Shown here in pieces: positions 19,079 to 32,456 of a DNA stretch of 64,000 nucleotides. The position numbers and the translations under genes are program-made. The notes beneath the pieces were generated by a model. That model was not told where the DNA came from. It searched no databases and was given only the letters and a program-made list of their open reading frames with translations. The stretch is from positions 186,001 to 250,000 of the IMG/VR virus record IMGVR_UViG_3300037502_003770; one strand, written 5' to 3'. How positions within the stretch are numbered: the stretch's first letter is position 1; the number at the start of each line of letters is the position of its first letter.

Positions 19079-19104
19079 AAAGGGTACTTTTTTAAGTACC
19101 CTTT
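19079..19104. terminator. Bidirectional terminator between convergent capsid and nuclease genes
   Basis: AAAGGGTACTT-TTTT-AAGTACCCTTT stem-loop. Confidence 0.75.
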
Positions 19105-20615
19105 GTTCTTTTATAGATAAGTGTTTCAAATTTTTCTTTATTTTTTTCAAAATCGTTTTTAAAAGTAAAAATTTGTTTACTATAAGTTTTATTTAAAAAT
19201 TTACATTGATTATTTACTTTACTATATGTAAATTTTGTTAATTTAGAAGCTTCAGTCATAGACCTATATTCTGCAATAATTTCTTTTGTCTCTAAATCAT
19301 ATAAATAAACAGGCATACTTTCACCGCTTAATAATTTACTTTCTTTTATTTTATTAATAGTTTCTTCATCTCTTTTTTTACCTTCCCAAAATTTAGGTGA
19401 ATTTTCTGATAACCATTTCTTTTGTTCTTCTGTTTTTGGTCTACCTAAAACTTTAGCTGCTTCACCACGTTTTACTCTTTTATCAACATGTTCTTTAGTT
19501 TGTTTTCTACCTAAACCAGCTTTAGACATCTTTTGTCTTGTTTCTTCTGAAATAATTTTATTTCTACCACCTAAATCAATATTATAACCTATGTTTCTAT
19601 CAGTAGAATTATATTCTTTTATATAAAAGATTTCTTTTTCATTTAGTTCATTAATATCATGAGTTTCGTAAATAACGTCAAATTTAAAGTTATCAAATCC
19701 ATATTTAATAATTGCATTTTTTAAATGCTCATTACATTTTAATCTTTTATAACATGTTATTCTATGTCTTAATAAACGATAAGTTTGTCCAATATAAATT
19801 TTACCATTAATTAAATTTGTTATTTTATAAATAAGACCAGGATTTCTTAAATTAAACCTTTCTATAATATCTTCTTTTTTAGGATAAGGTTTAATCATAT
19901 GTTTAATTTTCTCATAAAAATTTTTATTTTCATATTTATTACCTATAAAATAAAAATATCTACTTTTACGAAGTTGTGTATTAAATTTAGCGTTAGGGTA
20001 AACTTTCAATACATTTTCAACTGAACTAGAACCAATCTTTTTTCTTATAGTTTTTTCTGAATAAGCTTTCCCATCTATTATAATTTTCATTCTTTTTTTC
20101 TCATTACCATACTTGTCATAATTCCCTTCCATAAGACCTACATAATACCAATTGCATGATTGATAGATTATACCTATTTCACCAGCAAGAGCGTCTGTTG
20201 TGGCTGTAATGACCTTATAATCGGTGTTTTTCTTTAACAATTTACAAACTTTTGAAATAAAGAAAGATGCTGTATTAATAGGTGTCCAATGAAGACAAAC
20301 TCCTCTTGAAAGGAGGATTATTTTTTCAAAGAAATCATATTTTTTCCAATGGTCTTTATTTGCGGAATACTCATGAGAAAAAACAAGCACACCTCCAAGG
20401 TATTCAATATTATCAATATTAAAAAATATACCAAAATAGTATATATTATAAGGTGCTAAAGCTTTAAGGTATTCATATTCTTTAACAATATTTTCAGCTT
20501 CTAAACGAGTTATTTCTTTAATAACCGTATTTTTCAAAGAAGCTTTATTTTTATCAAAAGGAAGTATTTCTTCTAATTCTTTTTCTTTTCTAATTAGATA
20601 CTGATGGCAATCCAT
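19092..20615 (-). CDS. Fusion: Mom-like (GNAT-fold) DNA modification domain + GIY-YIG endonuclease with NUMOD3/IENR1-like DNA-binding tail
   Basis: aa 1-245: LSRGVCLHWTPINTASFFIS, TDALAGEIGIIYQSCNWYYVG, KSRYFYFIG...KPYPK (Mom-like); from aa 260: LIYKITNLINGKIYIGQT, LNEKEIFYI, GYN; ISEETRQKMSKA; PVYLYDL...YRSMTEAS. Confidence 0.85.
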   Translation of the reverse strand: MDCHQYLIRKEKELEEILPFDKNKASLKNTVIKEITRLEAENIVKEYEYLKALAPYNIYYFGIFFNIDNIEYLGGVLVFSHEYSANKDHWKKYDFFEKIILLSRGVCLHWTPINTASFFISKVCKLLKKNTDYKVITATTDALAGEIGIIYQSCNWYYVGLMEGNYDKYGNEKKRMKIIIDGKAYSEKTIRKKIGSSSVENVLKVYPNAKFNTQLRKSRYFYFIGNKYENKNFYEKIKHMIKPYPKKEDIIERFNLRNPGLIYKITNLINGKIYIGQTYRLLRHRITCYKRLKCNEHLKNAIIKYGFDNFKFDVIYETHDINELNEKEIFYIKEYNSTDRNIGYNIDLGGRNKIISEETRQKMSKAGLGRKQTKEHVDKRVKRGEAAKVLGRPKTEEQKKWLSENSPKFWEGKKRDEETINKIKESKLLSGESMPVYLYDLETKEIIAEYRSMTEASKLTKFTYSKVNNQCKFLNKTYSKQIFTFKNDFEKNKEKFETLIYKRTKGT

Positions 20616-24709: not shown

Positions 24710-25924
24710 TTAAAAACCTATTTTATTTTTTGATTTAGTAGGTATTTGAATATCATTCAAATCTTGATAATTAAATATATCTGAAAGGGCTGTCGCTTCT
24801 GTAAATTCTACATCATTTAATTTAAGTTCTTTTGCTACTTTATTTGCATATTCGGGTGTAAGTTTTTTAAATTCGTGTTGAATTTTTAATCTACCTGGTC
24901 TAGTAATAGCATCATCAATATTTTTAATATCAGTATTAAAAGTTAAAATAAATTTACAATTAACTACATCAGAAAGCATACCATCACCCATATTTAATAT
25001 TAAAGAAGTAGCGTTACCTGAATGATTTTCTTCTCTTGGTTTTATGATTTCTTCAGCATCTTCTACAATTATAATAGAATTAGCACATTCAGTAATAATA
25101 TAATGTAAACAAGAAGGGTCAGATAAATAAGGAACAAAATCTTTTGTTATTAAGAAAAAGTTTTTATTTATTAAAGAAGTTAAATATCTTAGGTAAGATG
25201 TTTTACCAGTACCTTTGTGCCCATGAATTAAATATAAACCACTATTATTATCTGATAAAGATTTAACTATCTTTTTGTGTTTATCGTTAAATCCTTCACC
25301 ATAATAAGTATTAAGATTTATTTTTAATCTTTTAATAGGGAATTTTCTACTATAAAAACCATTTTGCCCTTTAAGAATAAGATTTATTTTAGATTGTTTT
25401 CTTTTTGAAGAAGATTTATTCATTAAATCTTCAAAATATTTTATTAAAGTAAGATACTCTTCTTGTGAAAAGTTGTATAAATAAACTTCTTGATATTTAC
25501 GAATAATCTCTTTTTTATCATCCAAAGATATAGCGATTTCTAAAACTTTGTTAGGTCTTTCTTTACTATAGATATATCTTTTGATTTCTACATCATCTTC
25601 ATCTTCTGCATGTTCATCTTCGTATTCTTGTATAATTGAGGAAGGAGGTGAGATATTCTTACTATCTTTAATTTCAATATAACCAAAACTAGTATTCATT
25701 ATATCAGACATATTGAATTTTTCTGAAAGAAATTTCAAAAAATCTTTTAATTCTAAAGTAGGGATATCAGGTATATAAATCCTGTACCCTGAAAAGAATT
25801 CAGGGTCAGGATTTGAAAGACTATTTTTAATTACTAAATCATGGATAATACTAAAATGAGCATTAGTATGTGATAAATCATAACTTTTTTTAAGTATTTC
25901 ACTATTAATTTTATCTGTATTCAT
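24710..25924 (-). CDS. AAA+ ATPase
   Basis: Walker A GHKGTGKT, Walker B IIIVEDAE, second region of homology TFNTDIKNIDDAITRPGR. Confidence 0.92.
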   Translation of the reverse strand: MNTDKINSEILKKSYDLSHTNAHFSIIHDLVIKNSLSNPDPEFFSGYRIYIPDIPTLELKDFLKFLSEKFNMSDIMNTSFGYIEIKDSKNISPPSSIIQEYEDEHAEDEDDVEIKRYIYSKERPNKVLEIAISLDDKKEIIRKYQEVYLYNFSQEEYLTLIKYFEDLMNKSSSKRKQSKINLILKGQNGFYSRKFPIKRLKINLNTYYGEGFNDKHKKIVKSLSDNNSGLYLIHGHKGTGKTSYLRYLTSLINKNFFLITKDFVPYLSDPSCLHYIITECANSIIIVEDAEEIIKPREENHSGNATSLILNMGDGMLSDVVNCKFILTFNTDIKNIDDAITRPGRLKIQHEFKKLTPEYANKVAKELKLNDVEFTEATALSDIFNYQDLNDIQIPTKSKNKIGF

Positions 25925-26172: not shown

Positions 26173-28893
26173 TTATAATCTTGGGTCAATTTGTGATTCT
26201 TCTTTTAATTTTAAATGTAACTTACACATAAGGTTAAAATAATCTTTATTATCTATGTTTAAATCAGAGTATTTAATATCTAATAAACTTTTACTTAAAG
26301 AAAATTCTTCTATTGAAGTTCTAAGTTTTTTATTTATTGATTTTTTATTAAGTAATTTATTGTATTTAAATTCACTTAAATAATCATGACCATAAACAAT
26401 AGTTAGATAATTTTTATTTCTACATTTTAGATATGGAGCTATATTGTTATTATAGACATATTCAGGTTTAATTACAACACCTTCCATATTCTGATTTTGT
26501 GTAAGTATATTATAGAAGTTATTAATATTTGTTAATAAATCATTTTCATTATTAGTAATATTTTCTCCTTCAATAAACGCTTCACAAGTATTAGTATTTA
26601 AATCTGCAATAAGATATGTTTTTTGTTTTAAAACATTTGTAAAAATATCTATATTACTTTCAGAACTACTAATCATATTTTTTTCTTCTCCATTATTATA
26701 AACTATTTTTAAAATAGAGAATGGTTCAATAGTAGTTTCAACTTCTTTAGAATAAATATCTAATTGATTTTTATAATTTTGAAGTAAAGATTTATTTTCA
26801 TCAAGAGATAAATGTTGTTTATAATAATTTCTATAATTAGAATAAGTGTTGTTTATGTTATTACCTAATAAATCAGATAATTCTTTTTTATTACGGTCTT
26901 TACTGATAGTATTATAATCTACTGAATTAAAACTATCTTTTATTGAAGAGAATATTTTTTCAAATCCTGTTTTTTCTAAGAAAGTATTTTCTTCTTTAAT
27001 AACATTATAGTACTTATCAAAATTATTATCAATTAAACCATCACTTAATAAAGACCAAGGCAATAATTCACCATCTCCAATTATTAAGTTAATATTATTT
27101 TGTTTAAAATAATCTTCAGTAAAAATAGTATATAATTTAGAATAAACATTACTTAAATCTTTATTTTTAATAATAAAACCATTTCTACTAGTACAATAGT
27201 TTTTATCAGAGTTTTCAGGATTAAATAAATAGAAATTACATCTTGAACCCATATATTTAGGTTGTAGAATTAATTTATTAATATTTTTATTTCTAAAATA
27301 TTCAATACCTTCTTGTAATGATTCTATATCATTATCTAATTTATTAGTAGGAGACATTGTTCCACTAATAAAGTTTACTTTATTTAGATTAATAAGTCTT
27401 TTAATCTTATTTAAATCTTTAGAATCGATATATTCTGTATTAACATAATTACCTACTTCTTTAATTAAACTAAATAAAATTTCATTTTTATTTTCGTAAT
27501 TAGAATCTACCCAATTTATTAAAGGTTTAAAGCTTTTAAAAAGACTTATTGAAGATAATCTTTTACCATAAACAGAGCCAGTATCAATAAAAATTCTATT
27601 TTTATTAAGAGAAACCTCATAAAAATTAATATGTCCATTAATTACTTTAATAAACGAGTGTTCAGACGTTTTAAAGATAGGTGATAGTAATTCATTAATT
27701 AAATTATTAGTCGCCTCATAATCGATTTCTGTATCGTTTACGTAGATTTTCTTAGGATATCTGAAACCACCTTTAACTTGATTACTTATTGAAGTATTAT
27801 CTACCTTTAAAAGATACTTATTTTCACAAGGAGCGTGATTTAAAATAAAATAATCATTATATAAGAAAGGATAACAAATAGTATCAATAATTTCAAAGAA
27901 TTTATTTCTACATTCCTCATCAGATTGTAAATAAGGAATAGAACTAAATTTTTCTAAAACATCTTTTTCAGTATTATTAATTTCACCTTTTAAATATTTA
28001 TATACAAAATTTTCATGATTACCTAAAGTAATTTTAATATTATCTTTGTTTAAATATATAAAGTCAACTATTTCTTTAGTATTAAAACCTTTATCTACAA
28101 AATCACCTATTAAAACAATATTAGATTTTATTTCTTTACTAAAAGCTTCTTTAATTAAAGGTTGAATGATATTATTTTCATCTATTATAAACCCATTTTT
28201 TAGAATAAGTCTTTTTAATGAATCCACATCCTCATGCACATCACCAATAACAACATATTCTTCATCATTACTTAATTTATAAGTTTGATATTTATCATAA
28301 TCATCTATTACTATTTCAATATTTTGAAAACTTTCTAATGATTTTACTTTAAAAATAGAACCATATTTAGATTTACTTATATTTGTAGAAAGTTCTTTCT
28401 TTAATTTAAGAACATGGTCTGAAGTAGTTCTATTAGCTCTTTTTCTATGTTCTTCTGGATAATTACTTATATTAGAAAAATAATCATTTCTATTATTGTA
28501 ATCAAAAACAACTAATTTAAGATTATAATTATATTCTTTACAATAAGAAACAATACTTTCTCTAAAACGAGGGTCAATTGCGGTAGAATTAATAATTACT
28601 AAATCAGCATTATTTGGAAAAGAAAGAGTATTTTTTAATTTATCAAATAATAAATTAAATGGTTTACTTCCCATAGTAAGATATGTTTCATTAAATTTAT
28701 CATATTCATGTAAACTACCTAAAATTTCATTTCTAATATTATCAGTAGATAATACGTGTACATTTTTAAATTCTGGGTATTTTTCTTTTATTTGAGGAAG
28801 TAATACATTATTAGTAAAATAATCTTTTCCACAAGAAGAAGGTCCAACATACATTAATACTGTATGATATTTAAGATTAAGAATATTTTTCAT
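26173..28893 (-). CDS. pnkp: Polynucleotide kinase-phosphatase-ligase (bacterial Pnkp type)
   Basis: N-terminal P-loop GPSSCGK; metallophosphoesterase GDVHE, GDFVDKG, GNHE, GH, DTG; ligase motifs QPKYMGSR, DGELLPW, EGVVIKP, KCR; ends IDPRL. Confidence 0.9.
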   Translation of the reverse strand: MKNILNLKYHTVLMYVGPSSCGKDYFTNNVLLPQIKEKYPEFKNVHVLSTDNIRNEILGSLHEYDKFNETYLTMGSKPFNLLFDKLKNTLSFPNNADLVIINSTAIDPRFRESIVSYCKEYNYNLKLVVFDYNNRNDYFSNISNYPEEHRKRANRTTSDHVLKLKKELSTNISKSKYGSIFKVKSLESFQNIEIVIDDYDKYQTYKLSNDEEYVVIGDVHEDVDSLKRLILKNGFIIDENNIIQPLIKEAFSKEIKSNIVLIGDFVDKGFNTKEIVDFIYLNKDNIKITLGNHENFVYKYLKGEINNTEKDVLEKFSSIPYLQSDEECRNKFFEIIDTICYPFLYNDYFILNHAPCENKYLLKVDNTSISNQVKGGFRYPKKIYVNDTEIDYEATNNLINELLSPIFKTSEHSFIKVINGHINFYEVSLNKNRIFIDTGSVYGKRLSSISLFKSFKPLINWVDSNYENKNEILFSLIKEVGNYVNTEYIDSKDLNKIKRLINLNKVNFISGTMSPTNKLDNDIESLQEGIEYFRNKNINKLILQPKYMGSRCNFYLFNPENSDKNYCTSRNGFIIKNKDLSNVYSKLYTIFTEDYFKQNNINLIIGDGELLPWSLLSDGLIDNNFDKYYNVIKEENTFLEKTGFEKIFSSIKDSFNSVDYNTISKDRNKKELSDLLGNNINNTYSNYRNYYKQHLSLDENKSLLQNYKNQLDIYSKEVETTIEPFSILKIVYNNGEEKNMISSSESNIDIFTNVLKQKTYLIADLNTNTCEAFIEGENITNNENDLLTNINNFYNILTQNQNMEGVVIKPEYVYNNNIAPYLKCRNKNYLTIVYGHDYLSEFKYNKLLNKKSINKKLRTSIEEFSLSKSLLDIKYSDLNIDNKDYFNLMCKLHLKLKEESQIDPRL

Positions 28894-30206
28894 TATTTTT
28901 TTGTAATTAAAGCTACTTGCGTTGGTTGAATATTGTTTACTGTATCACCACAATAAGATATTTCTATATTGTATAAATTATTATCTATAATGTTAGATAA
29001 AAATGATTGAAATTCGATTTCATTAAATTCAAATTTATGGTCATGATGTCTACTATCAACATTATCATCAAATATATAAAATTGATTAAATGATTGATTA
29101 GGTGTTGTAATAACAAATTTATCAAAATTAATATTATCTACAACTTGTTTAATTAAATATTTAGCATCATCTATTTCTAAATGTTCTATAACTTCTGTTA
29201 AAAGAACATCCATTTTATTATTAGAAAATTCATTTTCTGTATAAATTTCAAGAAATTCTGAAATATCATTAAATAAGTAAACATAATCTTCTAGTTCTTT
29301 TTTTCTAATAGTATGTTTTAAATCTTCTATTATTTCAGAATCTTTATCAATAGAATAAATAACAAATTCTTTATTATCATTCTTTAATTGTTTACCATAT
29401 CTTGTTGAATAAAAGCCTTCACCACAACCTAAATCAATAAGTGATTTATCTAAAGTAATTATTTTACTAATATGGTTATATCTTTGAATATGTGTATCTC
29501 CTATTGAAAAATCATATTTATTAGTAGAAGATTCATCTAATATCTTTTTAAAATTAACGAATTTATTACTTGAACTAGATAAGAAATTCTTTTTATAAAG
29601 GTATCTTATAAAATAAGGAGAATCAATACTTACAATAAGTTTAAGATATTTTTCAACTAACTTATCATCAAAATAAATATCTTCTTTATTAATTAAAGTA
29701 GAAAAGATTGTAAATACTGTAGTAACAGATAATAAATATGTTAATGATTTATTTGTTGTAATAGTTACATTATAAATATCTTTACCTATTAAAGTAAAGT
29801 CAATTTTACTATTAGAAAAATACTTATTAAAAATAAGAAAATAGTCTTGGTAATCTAATTCATAACAGCTAAAAGTTATTGAATGTTGATAAATATCATC
29901 AATATCTTTTACGTTTTGTTTTCTTAAACTATCAGAAAGATATTCATTAATTAATGAATTATAACAAAAAGATGAACAATATTTATTAACAGATAAATAT
30001 TCAAAATCGGGATTACTTTTATCTTTAAAAGATATAGTATCAGGACTATCGGTAAAAAATATATTATACTGTGTATTTAAACCTTCAGTATAATATGCAA
30101 AAGAAAAACCTTCTCTAATAGATTTAATTAACGGTAAAGAAGAAGGGTTTTTATTTATTAAAAAAGATAACTCAGGGTTTGTTGAGTTTAATTGAAGAAA
30201 AGCCAT
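28893..30206 (-). CDS. hen1: 3'-terminal RNA ribose 2'-O-methyltransferase Hen1
   Basis: N-terminal LSFLINKNP (Hen1 ligase-activating domain), DLGCGEG, TEVIEHL, TTPN..FN, RHHDHKFEF; stop overlaps pnkp start (TAATG). Confidence 0.9.
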   Translation of the reverse strand: MAFLQLNSTNPELSFLINKNPSSLPLIKSIREGFSFAYYTEGLNTQYNIFFTDSPDTISFKDKSNPDFEYLSVNKYCSSFCYNSLINEYLSDSLRKQNVKDIDDIYQHSITFSCYELDYQDYFLIFNKYFSNSKIDFTLIGKDIYNVTITTNKSLTYLLSVTTVFTIFSTLINKEDIYFDDKLVEKYLKLIVSIDSPYFIRYLYKKNFLSSSSNKFVNFKKILDESSTNKYDFSIGDTHIQRYNHISKIITLDKSLIDLGCGEGFYSTRYGKQLKNDNKEFVIYSIDKDSEIIEDLKHTIRKKELEDYVYLFNDISEFLEIYTENEFSNNKMDVLLTEVIEHLEIDDAKYLIKQVVDNINFDKFVITTPNQSFNQFYIFDDNVDSRHHDHKFEFNEIEFQSFLSNIIDNNLYNIEISYCGDTVNNIQPTQVALITKK

Positions 30207-30260
30207 ATTTATATGTTTAATTTTAAACGATATAAATATTACTTTTAAACTTCATATATG

Positions 30261-30387
30261 TTAAATATTTAATGAATTAATTCTTTCATTTGAAAAATCA
30301 AAATAAGATTTAACTATTTCTGTACCTAAAAAATTTCTATTTAGTTTTTTTGATACATAACAAGTAGTACCTGTACCTGAAAATGGG
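30261..30387 (-). pseudogene. 3' fragment of DNA methyltransferase split by tnpB element
   Basis: Minus-strand translation PFSGTGTTCYVSKKLNRNFLGTEIVKSYFDFSNERINSLNI* (motif I FxGxG); rejoins in frame with 31849-32456. Confidence 0.9.
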
Positions 30388-31848
30388 TTAGAAACTGTTA
30401 ATTATTTTATATTCTTCTATTATACTTTATATCACTTTATCTTAATAAAAATAATTTTATTTTACTATTTATATTAAAATACTACCACTCTTTAAAATAT
30501 ATGTATTCTATTAAAGTAAGACTTTATTTAAATAAACAACAACAAGAAAAATTAGAAACAATTTTTGATGCTTGCCGTTTTACTTATAATAAAGCCCTTT
30601 CTCATAAAATAAATACTTATACTAATAGTAAAAAATCTTTATCAAAAAATGATATTTCTAAATATTATCATGGTTTTTTAAGAAAAGAATTTTCTTTTTT
30701 AAAAGATGTTAATACTAAAGTGGTTAAACAAAGTTTAAGAGATTTAGATAAAGCTTTTAAAAACTTTTTTAAAAATAATAAAGGATTTCCTAAATTTAAA
30801 AGTAAGAGAGAAAAAGAAAAGAAATGTAGATTTCCTAATGATGCTATTTCTAAGGAATTTTTATCAGAAGGGAAGTATTTAAATTTTATAAAAGGTTTAT
30901 ATAAAGTAAGGTTTAGATGTTCTAAAGAGTATTTAGAAATATTACAATCTATTAAAAGAGATGATGATATAGAAAATATAACTGTTACTAAGAAAAGAAG
31001 TGGTATTTATGAAGCTTCTATTTGTTTAAATAAATCTAAACCAAAAGGAAAGAAGTTAAAAGAGACTGATTCTATTATAGGAATAGATTTAGGTATTAAA
31101 GAATTATTAGTCCTTTCTGATGGAACTGTACATAAAAATAATAAATATTATTTAAAATCAGAAAAGAAATTAAAGAAATTACAAAGGAAGCTTTCTAAAA
31201 GTATAGAATGTTTTAAAGAGAGTAAGAACCCTAAGAGTAAATATTTTACTAAGAATAAAGGTAAAAATTTAGAAAAGAACAGATTAAAAGTAGCAAGACT
31301 TAATGAAAAGATAACAAACCAAAAAGATACTTATATTCATGAAATAACTTCTAAAATTATAAACGAAAACCAAGTTATAGTAATGGAAGATTTGAATGTA
31401 AGCGGTATGTTAAAAAATCATAAGTTAGCAAGGTCAATTCAAAATGTTTCTTTTTCTGAAATAAAGAGACAATTACAATATAAATCGTCTTTTTATGGAA
31501 GAGAATTTATTTTAATAGATAGGTTCTTTCCTTCAAGTAAGACTTGTTCTTGCTGTGGAAATAAGAAGAAAGATTTAAAATTAAGTGACCGAGTATATAA
31601 ATGTAATAATCCTTCATGCGGAATAGAAATCGATAGAGATTTAAATGCAGCGATAAACATTCGCAACGAAGGTATAAGAATAATGAATAACAGAAATGTT
31701 ATTTCAAAAAGTAGGGGTCCGTTGCTCCGAACATAACGCTTGTGGACTATCCTCTATCGGGGTTATAATTGCAATATATTATAATTAGATATGATAGGTT
31801 GAAACAAGAAAACGGTATTATATGAAAGTATAATATTTATTATAACGG
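30388..31848 (+). mobile_element. Non-autonomous IS607-like tnpB element (1461 bp)
   Basis: Left flank ends TGGG, right end ends GG; removal restores TTTGACCCATTT (F-D-P-F) on minus; 11-bp subterminal inverted match tattatacttt (30418-30428) / aaagtataata (31825-31835); no tnpA. Confidence 0.85.
30501..31736 (+). CDS. tnpB: TnpB RNA-guided nuclease, canonical RuvC
   Basis: N-terminal HTH (KVRLYLNKQQ...CRFTYN), GIDLG, VMEDL, CSCCG...CNNPSCG zinc finger, DRDLNAAINI; CTATTTA at 30465-30471. Confidence 0.95.
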   Translation: MYSIKVRLYLNKQQQEKLETIFDACRFTYNKALSHKINTYTNSKKSLSKNDISKYYHGFLRKEFSFLKDVNTKVVKQSLRDLDKAFKNFFKNNKGFPKFKSKREKEKKCRFPNDAISKEFLSEGKYLNFIKGLYKVRFRCSKEYLEILQSIKRDDDIENITVTKKRSGIYEASICLNKSKPKGKKLKETDSIIGIDLGIKELLVLSDGTVHKNNKYYLKSEKKLKKLQRKLSKSIECFKESKNPKSKYFTKNKGKNLEKNRLKVARLNEKITNQKDTYIHEITSKIINENQVIVMEDLNVSGMLKNHKLARSIQNVSFSEIKRQLQYKSSFYGREFILIDRFFPSSKTCSCCGNKKKDLKLSDRVYKCNNPSCGIEIDRDLNAAINIRNEGIRIMNNRNVISKSRGPLLRT

Positions 31849-31868
31849 TCAAAAATTAAATCACCTTC
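31711..31868 (+). ncRNA. Putative omegaRNA (scaffold to 31848 plus flank-derived guide)
   Basis: GC-richer structured stretch overlapping the tnpB 3' end (gtaggggtccgttgctccgaacataacgcttgtggac...gaaacaagaa) up to the element's right end; boundaries inferred. Confidence 0.5.
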
Positions 31869-32456
31869 ATTAGAAAAATTTGTTATAATCTTTTCAACTA
31901 ATTCTTCTGGAAAAACGGCTGAATGTTCTTTAAGAACTTTTTTTCCTCTATTAATTTTCCAAGTATCTGATAATTCACCTCTTTTAAAATTAACTTTATC
32001 AAATTGTCTACTTATTGAATTACTAGAATCAAATATTAAAATTAACTCGCTTTGTCTATTTAAAACACCTGGTAACATAGATGGTTGACCATGCCCTTTA
32101 TCCCAAACAATAATATCTTTTAATTGTTCAGCAAATTCACCTATAAGTTTAAAAAATGCTCTTTTAGAACCTGTAACTATTTGAATATTATAAAATATAA
32201 TTTTACTAGTTCTTAATAATTCAGTTAAAATTGATTTATGTAATTCATAAAAATCATCTATAGGTAAATCATCATTAAAACCAACATATTTTGTAGAAAA
32301 ACCCTTTTCTTTATAACTTCTTTTAACATATTTATCACCTCTAATACGAAGATTCATATTATAAGGTGGGGATGTTATAACTACATCAATTTCTTTGTCT
32401 TGTATTTCTTTTAATATATCTAAACAATTTTGATTATATATTTTATTAATTTCCAT
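31849..32456 (-). pseudogene. 5' fragment of beta-class N4C/N6A DNA methyltransferase (ORF track 31818-32456)
   Basis: Motif IV VITSPPYN near the N-terminus, HSAVFPEELV, then GDLIFD| truncated just before motif I by the insertion. Confidence 0.9.

Follow-up and report, generated by a model that had tools for sequence, protein, structure and literature searches.

A divergent hen1-pnkp gene pair in a jumbo phage, predicted to encode an RNA repair-and-modification module

Bacteriophage T4 repairs tRNA with its Pnk and Rnl1 enzymes as a counter-defence against the PrrC anticodon nuclease. The bacterial Pnkp-Hen1 system has been described in detail at the level of biochemistry and structure, yet its natural substrates and biological role are unknown (PMC4411300). 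In vitro, bacterial homologues repair colicin-cut tRNA and the product resists recleavage; in the published mechanism, the N-terminal domain of Hen1 (Hen1-N) locks the insertion domain of the ligase open (PMC4411300). Here, we describe an adjacent hen1 and pnkp pair in a 64,000-nucleotide stretch of viral DNA (the window), which corresponds to bases 186001-250000 of the 312,694-bp IMG/VR virus record IMGVR_UViG_3300037502_003770 (G000). We consider it probable that the two genes encode a functional phage Hen1-Pnkp RNA repair-and-modification module. This prediction draws on domains and motifs that are intact save for one P-loop residue, on purifying selection, on the many large phages that carry the pair, and on a modelled association between Hen1-N and the ligase.

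An earlier note, made from the letters of the window, had named hen1 and pnkp and had given their positions and domain motifs, all of which are borne out by the open reading frames (ORFs), the Pfam matches and the motif positions collected in Table 1. The hen1/pnkp junction reads AAAAAATAATGAAA, in which the final A of the hen1 TAA stop codon is also the first base of the pnkp ATG. The note had called the genes "translationally coupled". The 1-nt overlap is observed, and coupling is a prediction from that overlap.

Table 1. Features of the hen1-pnkp locus, in window coordinates. aa, amino acids; SAM, S-adenosylmethionine; AF2, AlphaFold2; E, expect value.
Feature	Position	Strand	Remarks
hen1	28893-30206	-	437-aa ORF
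pnkp	26173-28893	-	906-aa ORF; kinase, phosphatase and ligase in one polypeptide
TAATG junction	28891..28895	-	hen1 stop and pnkp start share one base
Hen1 N-terminal domain, residues 4-226	29529..30197	-	PF22032 (Hen1_N), E 3e-53; predicted ligase-activating module
Hen1 methyltransferase domain, residues 238-436	28899..29495	-	TIGR04074 match; alignment to C. thermocellum Hen1 3jwg
Hen1 SAM motif DLGCGEG	29415-29435	-	
Hen1 metal motif EVIEH	29181-29195	-	
Hen1 metal motif RHHDHKFE	29028-29051	-	
Predicted polynucleotide 5'-kinase domain, residues 1-200	28294..28893	-	Weak Pfam AAA_33 match; AF2 model
Walker A GPSSCGKD, residues 17-24	28822..28845	-	Asp24 instead of the usual Ser/Thr
D-x-x-R motif STDNIR	28732-28749	-	
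Predicted binuclear metallophosphoesterase (2',3'-phosphatase), residues ~205-465	27499..28281	-	Metallophos, E 2.4e-6
Pnkp-type RNA ligase (adenylyltransferase) domain, residues ~495-906	26176..27411	-	PF16542 (PNKP_ligase), E 6.6e-24
Ligase motif I KYMGSR	27241-27258	-	

Shine-Dalgarno (SD)-like motifs were found upstream of 1.7% of 295 ORFs in G000, compared to 7.7% at random positions. The ORF leaders of this genome, including those of hen1 (30207-30230) and pnkp, are A-rich and G-poor. Because SD motifs are almost absent, reinitiation at TAATG is a plausible route to pnkp translation. The near-absence also suggests a host that initiates translation without SD motifs, as in Bacteroidota. 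A promoter and terminator scan returned 51 promoter-like sites against 52.3 expected and 0 terminators, and is uninformative at 20% guanine-plus-cytosine (GC) content.

The phage Hen1 also matches Pfam Methyltransf_31 and is predicted to have a class I SAM methyltransferase domain. Residues E338, E341, H342 and H390, which we take from Hen1 structures to be the metal ligands, do not vary across an alignment of 12 sequences, cultured-phage copies among them. The phage Pnkp scored 138.5 bits with TIGR04075 (bacter_Pnkp), for which the NCBIfam equivalog cut-off is 750, and Hen1 scored 78.9 bits with TIGR04074 (bacter_Hen1), for which the cut-off is 340 and with which only the methyltransferase half aligned. 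The earlier note's description of a bacterial Pnkp-Hen1 system thus holds for gene and domain content, though not for canonical status. By these scores, the phage pair is best classed as a divergent subfamily rather than as canonical bacterial Pnkp/Hen1 equivalogs.

The catalytic parts of Pnkp line up with those of solved relatives. Alignment to 4j6o places phosphatase residues D218, H220, D264, N292, H293, H421 and D437 opposite D187, H189, D233, N263, H264, H376 and D392 of the Clostridium thermocellum (Cth) enzyme, and the motifs GDVH, GDFVDKG, GNHE, GH and DTG fall on essential Cth phosphatase residues. At the position of Cth Arg237 the phage phosphatase has Lys; GDxxDKG is the rule across the divergent clade, whereas the canonical copies carry GDxVDRG. 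The ligase region that contains KYMGSR, SRNG, ELLPWS, EGVVIKP and LKCRN aligns with the solved Capnocytophaga gingivalis Rnl, 4xrp_B (E 2.3e-45), which together with Hen1 4xrp_C (E 7.4e-41, full length) is the nearest solved relative. The C. thermocellum proteins are more distant (E 7e-11 for the ligase domain and 3e-12 for the Hen1 methyltransferase domain).

An AF2 model of the kinase domain (residues 1-210) had a predicted local distance difference test score (pLDDT) of 89.6. Its best fold matches in the PDB were the C. thermocellum Pnk (CthPnk) structures 4jt2, 4gp7 and 4gp6 (E 7e-10, template-modelling score TMt 0.72-0.79), ahead of the PFKFB kinases and T4 Pnk. The kinase part by itself matched T4 Pnk with an E-value of 0.04. 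Residues K23, D51 and R54 (of D-x-x-R) and R111 are invariant across the family alignment, and the roles of the D-x-x-R Asp and Arg have been described in CthPnk (PMC3902929).

We also modelled a complex of Pnkp residues 470-906 with Hen1 residues 1-235. The model scored 0.73, compared to 0.01 for the best control; that mark was attained by 51 of 78 solved complexes and by 2 of 108 mismatched pairs. In the model, ligase residues 622-693, which lie in the insertion region, contact Hen1 residues 1-77 and 113-146. These contacts fit the published mechanism (PMC4411300) and lend support to a predicted binding of Hen1-N to the ligase insertion domain. Because homologous complexes have already been solved, however, the pass speaks for likeness more than it offers independent proof.

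Selection was estimated by the Nei-Gojobori method between this phage and a sister contig, L004, from a JGI (Joint Genome Institute) metagenome, which has the identical gene order and shares 97-98% protein identity. The ratio of non-synonymous to synonymous substitution rates (dN/dS), from a single close pair with few substitutions per domain, was 0.12 for pnkp as a whole, 0.23 for the kinase (9 synonymous and 9 non-synonymous changes), 0.08 for the phosphatase, 0.12 for the ligase and 0.08 for hen1. By this measure, both genes appear to be under purifying selection in all their parts.

The pair is rare among phages. A tblastn search found Hen1 adjoining a Pnkp-type ligase in 5 of 50,697 cultured phage records, namely Xanthomonas XacN1, Stenotrophomonas CM1 and RAS14, and Vibrio RYC and vB_VpaM_sm033, which amount to four distinct phages; none is annotated as Hen1-Pnkp. 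The XacN1 genome paper of 2018 did report ORF197 as a PNKP and ORF198 as a homologue of Hen1, citing the bacterial repair complex (PMC5852040). In the full-text literature searched for Hen1 together with phage terms, no study of the function of a phage Hen1-Pnkp came to light. The present pair is therefore not the first in a phage, but the topic is almost unexplored. All five cultured records differ from the present locus in that the tblastn match spans only the ligase part of pnkp. The annotation of XacN1 and RYC, which was read, gives the ligase as a protein of its own, ~350-400 aa long. In XacN1 the kinase (AAA_33) is also a separate protein, and no phosphatase was detected alongside; in RYC, Hen1 is fused to a T4-type Pnk.

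Uncultivated viruses add to this picture. A pattern-based scan of 2.9 million IMG/VR contigs with the Hen1 alignment gave, as a lower bound, at least 22 further full-length viral hen1 loci, many of them on contigs of 130-504 kb. In 21 of the 22, hen1 has a partner beside it, be it pnkp, a ligase or a pnkp within which the sequence breaks off. At 17 loci, hen1 is followed on the same strand by all three pnkp domains in the order kinase-phosphatase-ligase (K-P-L), in a few cases with an intervening gene. Two of these 17, L009 and L012, have the kinase ORF separate from the phosphatase-ligase ORF. The full pnkp of L010, a giant-virus-binned contig, is on the opposite strand from hen1, and L011 ends within pnkp. 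L016 (L016:4636-8130) resembles RYC (L003:3983-7287) in having an Rnl followed by a fusion of Hen1 to a T4-type Pnk (717 aa in RYC and 709 aa in L016); the C-terminus of the RYC fusion matches T4 Pnk with an E-value of 3.5e-26 and Pnkp1 with 8e-18. L019 and L025 have a lone ligase beside hen1, as in XacN1, and no partner was detected beside hen1 in L014. On whether the pair is already common and described in phages, a point raised in the earlier note, the five cultured records and the IMG/VR loci amount to a weak yes, with rarity and a single mention in print.

Some of these loci have further peculiarities. In the split pnkp of L012 (L012:7354-11473) and L009 (L009:7344-10280), the kinase ORF is ~250 aa and the phosphatase-ligase ORF is 646 aa; the ~1.4-kb gap in L012 holds an opposite-strand ORF of 348 aa, possibly a mobile element. 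The parts list of RYC and L016 is that of the Capnocytophaga Pnkp1-Rnl-Hen1 system in two genes, and the GenBank label for the fusion is only "polynucleotide kinase". Single ORFs of 794-1324 aa at L028:5231-7759, L032:3736-7710 and L034:4681-7065 have weak Hen1 methyltransferase matches followed by Pnkp ligase matches, and may be more distant methyltransferase-ligase fusions.

The divergent clade to which the phage pair belongs is largely associated with phages, and its bacterial members are abundant in Bacillales, where they are annotated as "metallophosphoesterase" and "class I SAM-dependent methyltransferase". Full-length pnkp homologues in Paenibacillus, Brevibacillus, Listeria, Bacillus and Enterococcus have 33-40% identity over 100% of the length (among the matches listed), and Paenibacillus sp. 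UNCCL117 has hen1 (421 aa) followed by pnkp (861 aa), an order with overlapping ends that the phage pair matches. Quick maximum-likelihood trees of Hen1 and Pnkp put the canonical bacterial sequences beyond a very long branch; the bacterial side of the trees is undersampled, with homologues drawn from the matches listed. In both trees the phage proteins cluster with other viral copies, and the Bacillales sequences form one shallow crown next to deeply divergent viral copies. The trees drew the Bacillales nested inside the phage diversity, but the approximately unbiased (AU) test does not reject a single viral clade (p 0.52), and we do not adopt the nesting. Of the phylogenetic comparison proposed in the earlier note, then, the grouping with viral copies stands; the deep forks have no firm order, and transfer may have run in either direction.

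The same note had placed the pair in a phage, and this setting is confirmed by structural genes in the window (portal, major head protein and tail sheath) and by a CheckV completeness of 96% for the source record. Other products encoded in the window include an M15 endolysin, an exonuclease, a Mom-like protein and a DNA methyltransferase. G000 is a contractile-tailed jumbo phage; we call it a phage because the portal, head, sheath and endolysin genes share the window with the pair. The runs that contain its DNA are subsurface, aquatic, freshwater, lake and wastewater metagenomes, and a subsurface metagenome is the likely source. The GC content is ~22% genome-wide and ~20% over the hen1-pnkp locus. 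At the nucleotide level the locus had zero matches among the 50,697 phage records, and relatives appear only in protein-level searches. We considered a conserved third gene and rejected it: the downstream AAA ATPase (24710-25924) and the small neighbouring ORFs are kept in sister contig L004 only and not in other viral loci.

How might the two proteins act together? In the scheme that we propose, an RNA, most likely a tRNA, would be cut by a transesterifying nuclease to leave 2',3'-cyclic phosphate and 5'-OH ends. The phosphatase domain of Pnkp would open and then remove the cyclic phosphate, the kinase domain would phosphorylate the 5'-OH, and Hen1 would add a methyl group to the 2'-OH at the 3'-terminal nucleotide. 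With Hen1-N releasing its lock, the ligase domain would seal the break, and the sealed junction would be without the 2'-OH that is required for recleavage. For a lytic jumbo phage, the likeliest use of such a module would be to keep translation running during an infection in which tRNA or rRNA is cleaved by host defences or by competing ribotoxins. The enzymatic activities, the RNA substrate and the counter-defence role are all predictions, and the last of these, a plausible one, is drawn from homology, from the example of T4 Pnk/Rnl1 and from the module's recurrence among large phages. When the earlier note spoke of an "upgraded counter-defence" directed at anticodon nucleases, it made a reasonable inference.

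Several points weigh against this reading. The score of the complex model may reflect memory, in the modelling program, of the solved complexes 4XRP and 4E6N. The evidence for purifying selection has the narrow base given above. The in vivo substrates of bacterial Pnkp-Hen1 are unknown (PMC4411300). No cognate nuclease was identified for this phage, and no RNA run is listed. Finally, Asp24 occupies a Ser/Thr site that is essential in CthPnk, and the 5'-kinase step may be lost or altered. Searches of the genome turned up no further polynucleotide kinase: the only other AAA_33 match is an AAA+ ATPase, a tblastn search of G000 with the T4-like Pnk of RYC detected no T4-type Pnk (best E-value 0.39), and an XacN1-type kinase was also not found. 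If the kinase were dead, 5'-OH ends could not be repaired unless a host enzyme helped. Whether the system is "complete", as the earlier note had it, depends on a working GKD kinase.

The kinase question leads to the alternative that we take most seriously, which is quite possible although we would not bet on it: that the Ser/Thr-to-Asp change abolished or altered 5'-phosphorylation. The pair would then heal 3' ends, methylate, and ligate 5'-phosphate substrates only, or borrow a host kinase, with its own kinase domain retained as a dimerisation or scaffolding element. The P-loop GPSSCGKD, correctly read in the earlier note, does not fit the canonical Walker A pattern GxxxxGK[S/T]. Among 138 Pnkp homologues (121 from databases, counting the query, plus 17 pnkp copies, of which 16 come from viral contigs and one from Paenibacillus), Asp24 is found in this phage and its 97%-identical sister L004, and the other 136 have Ser or Thr. 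The equivalent residue of CthPnk, Ser22, is the one residue of the protein that ligates the catalytic Mg, and it is described as essential on the strength of alanine scanning (PMC3902929). The dN/dS of the kinase is also higher than that of the other two Pnkp domains. That ratio is still well under 1; the domain could be under selection without being catalytic, however, because the kinase domain of CthPnk is a homodimerisation module (PMC3902929). In favor of an active kinase, the remaining catalytic residues K23, D51, R54 and R111 are all kept, and the Asp carboxylate could itself ligate Mg. Moreover, loss of the activity with no replacement kinase found in the genome would break the repair of the 5'-OH ends left by the usual ribotoxins.

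Other readings concern what the pair is for. It could be a housekeeping system for RNA ends, in which phage or host RNAs are processed or stabilised without any attack by a host nuclease, for example by 3'-end 2'-O-methylation that blocks exonucleases or tailing, or by the joining of processed RNAs. Eukaryotic Hen1 stabilises small RNAs, the six tRNA genes and second RNA ligase of this phage suggest a broader RNA metabolism, and the bacterial system has no known in vivo substrates (PMC4411300). We nonetheless think this unlikely. RNA that has been broken to leave cyclic-phosphate and 5'-OH ends needs the full healing-and-sealing set, ligation gated by Hen1 is a design particular to repair coupled with immunisation (PMC4411300), and the established precedent of T4 Pnk/Rnl1 is one of counter-defence. 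A far bolder proposal, and in our view an improbable one, is that the divergent clade is primarily a counter-defence module of large phages. Phages would be its main reservoir in at least three architectures (fused K-P-L; Rnl with a fusion of Hen1 to T4-type Pnk; and kinase, Hen1 and lone ligase), and the Bacillales and Capnocytophaga-type systems would be offshoots. Methylated junctions would give host tRNAs lasting protection from anticodon nucleases in the course of infection, and GKD would be a retuning of the kinase, for example in its use of metal or nucleoside triphosphate, and no defect. We consider it very improbable that the pair is a passenger that does nothing for the phage, whether a horizontally acquired bacterial cassette or a piece of bacterial or misassembled sequence. 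A TnpB insertion sequence (IS) element does lie directly upstream of the pair, and the closest named homologues, among the matches listed, are chromosomal in Paenibacillus, Listeria and Bacillus. However, identity to any bacterial copy among those matches is 40% or less, the locus has a GC content like that of the rest of the phage, and the synteny is repeated in the independent sister contig L004, which lacks the IS element. Both genes are apparently under purifying selection, phage structural genes share the window, and the pair groups with viral copies in both trees. The matching GC content, the independent syntenic sister contig and the structural genes led us to reject misassembly and bacterial contamination.

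A repair-and-modification module in a phage, which we continue to favor, would be of interest for a system whose biochemistry is ahead of its biology. The phage setting offers a testable role, the reversal of abortive-infection cleavage of tRNA or rRNA together with a block on recleavage, which is beyond the reach of T4 Pnk/Rnl1. Genetics is possible because cultured carriers with known or named hosts exist (XacN1, CM1/RAS14, RYC and vB_VpaM_sm033). Ser/Thr-to-Asp at the Mg-binding position of the P-loop is in effect an experiment of nature on how the kinase works. What tempers the value of the locus is that a phage pair has been in print since 2018 and that all its functions are predicted from homology.

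Other elements of the genome touch on RNA metabolism or on the surroundings of the pair. A second RNA ligase of 350 aa (L037:1033-2085 (+), equivalent to G000:C1 ~95891-96943, outside the window) has an N-terminal oligonucleotide/oligosaccharide-binding (OB) fold (PF21189) followed by RNA_ligase (PF09414, E 6e-14), an Rnl2/Rnl5-like layout. The phage would thus appear to have two unrelated RNA-sealing enzymes. RtcB was not found in G000; the Rnl1 family (PF09511) had no match in G000 and none in the control genomes either, so this is not proof of absence. ARAGORN predicted six tRNA genes in G000, two for Met(CAT), one each for Asn(GTT), Glu(TTC) and Asp(GTC), and one of undetermined type, at G000:C1 298301-300754 and 77672-77746, outside the window. 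The targets of colicin E5-type nucleases include Asn and Asp tRNAs.

The IS element upstream of hen1 is a TnpB-only element of the IS200/IS605 type (1,452 bp, window 30395-31846; TnpB ORF 30501-31736 (+), with PF07282, PF01385 and PF12323). It is inserted in an N6/N4 DNA methyltransferase gene just upstream of hen1, which survives as a truncated 212-aa ORF (31818-32456 (-)) and a C-terminal remnant of ~40 codons (~30262-30394 (-)) on either side of the element. In sister contig L004 the methyltransferase gene is intact (244 aa) and without the TnpB insertion. A TnpB paralogue with 77% identity is found elsewhere in G000. A search for the host through TnpB homologues yielded no host, the matches being metagenome proteins, one metagenome-assembled genome (MAG) labelled "bacterium" and the paralogue itself. 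Elsewhere in the window, a 507-aa ORF (19092-20615 (-)) has a Mom-like domain (PF25680, E 5e-23, residues 31-246) and a GIY-YIG plus NUMOD1 module (residues 260-467); possible origins are a genuine fusion and the in-frame insertion of a homing endonuclease.

Compared to the canonical bacterial systems, the phage pair has the same hen1-then-pnkp order with overlapping ends, as found in the operons of Kribbella, Rhodococcus and a Dormiibacterota MAG. It also shares the single kinase/binuclear metallophosphatase/ligase polypeptide, with a kinase fold closest to CthPnk, and a Hen1 with a predicted ligase-binding domain at its N-terminus and a predicted Mn-type 2'-O-methyltransferase at its C-terminus. 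It differs in being phage-encoded and very distant in sequence (~19-20% identity between the phage Pnkp and the canonical copies sampled), with Lys for Cth Arg237 and Asp for Cth Ser22. The Bacillales pairs are closer: they match in gene order, architecture and the clade signatures GDxxDKG and KYMGSR, but are chromosomal and have a normal GK[S/T] P-loop.

The Capnocytophaga Pnkp1-Rnl-Hen1 heterohexamer (4XRP, 4XRU) provides the nearest solved relatives of the phage ligase and Hen1. Its ligase is a separate protein and its Pnkp1 is T4-like, whereas the phage has kinase, calcineurin-type phosphatase and ligase fused; a PDB search with the whole phage Pnkp gave no match to Capnocytophaga Pnkp1 (4xrp_A). 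The likeness to T4 Pnk and Rnl1 is one of task, in that there too a phage heals and seals tRNA cut by a host suicide nuclease, in that case PrrC (cited in PMC4411300). The T4 enzymes are unrelated, with a HAD (haloacid dehalogenase)-type phosphatase and Rnl1 of their own, and they do not methylate, so a T4-repaired tRNA can be cut again, in contrast to the junction that the phage Hen1 is predicted to protect.

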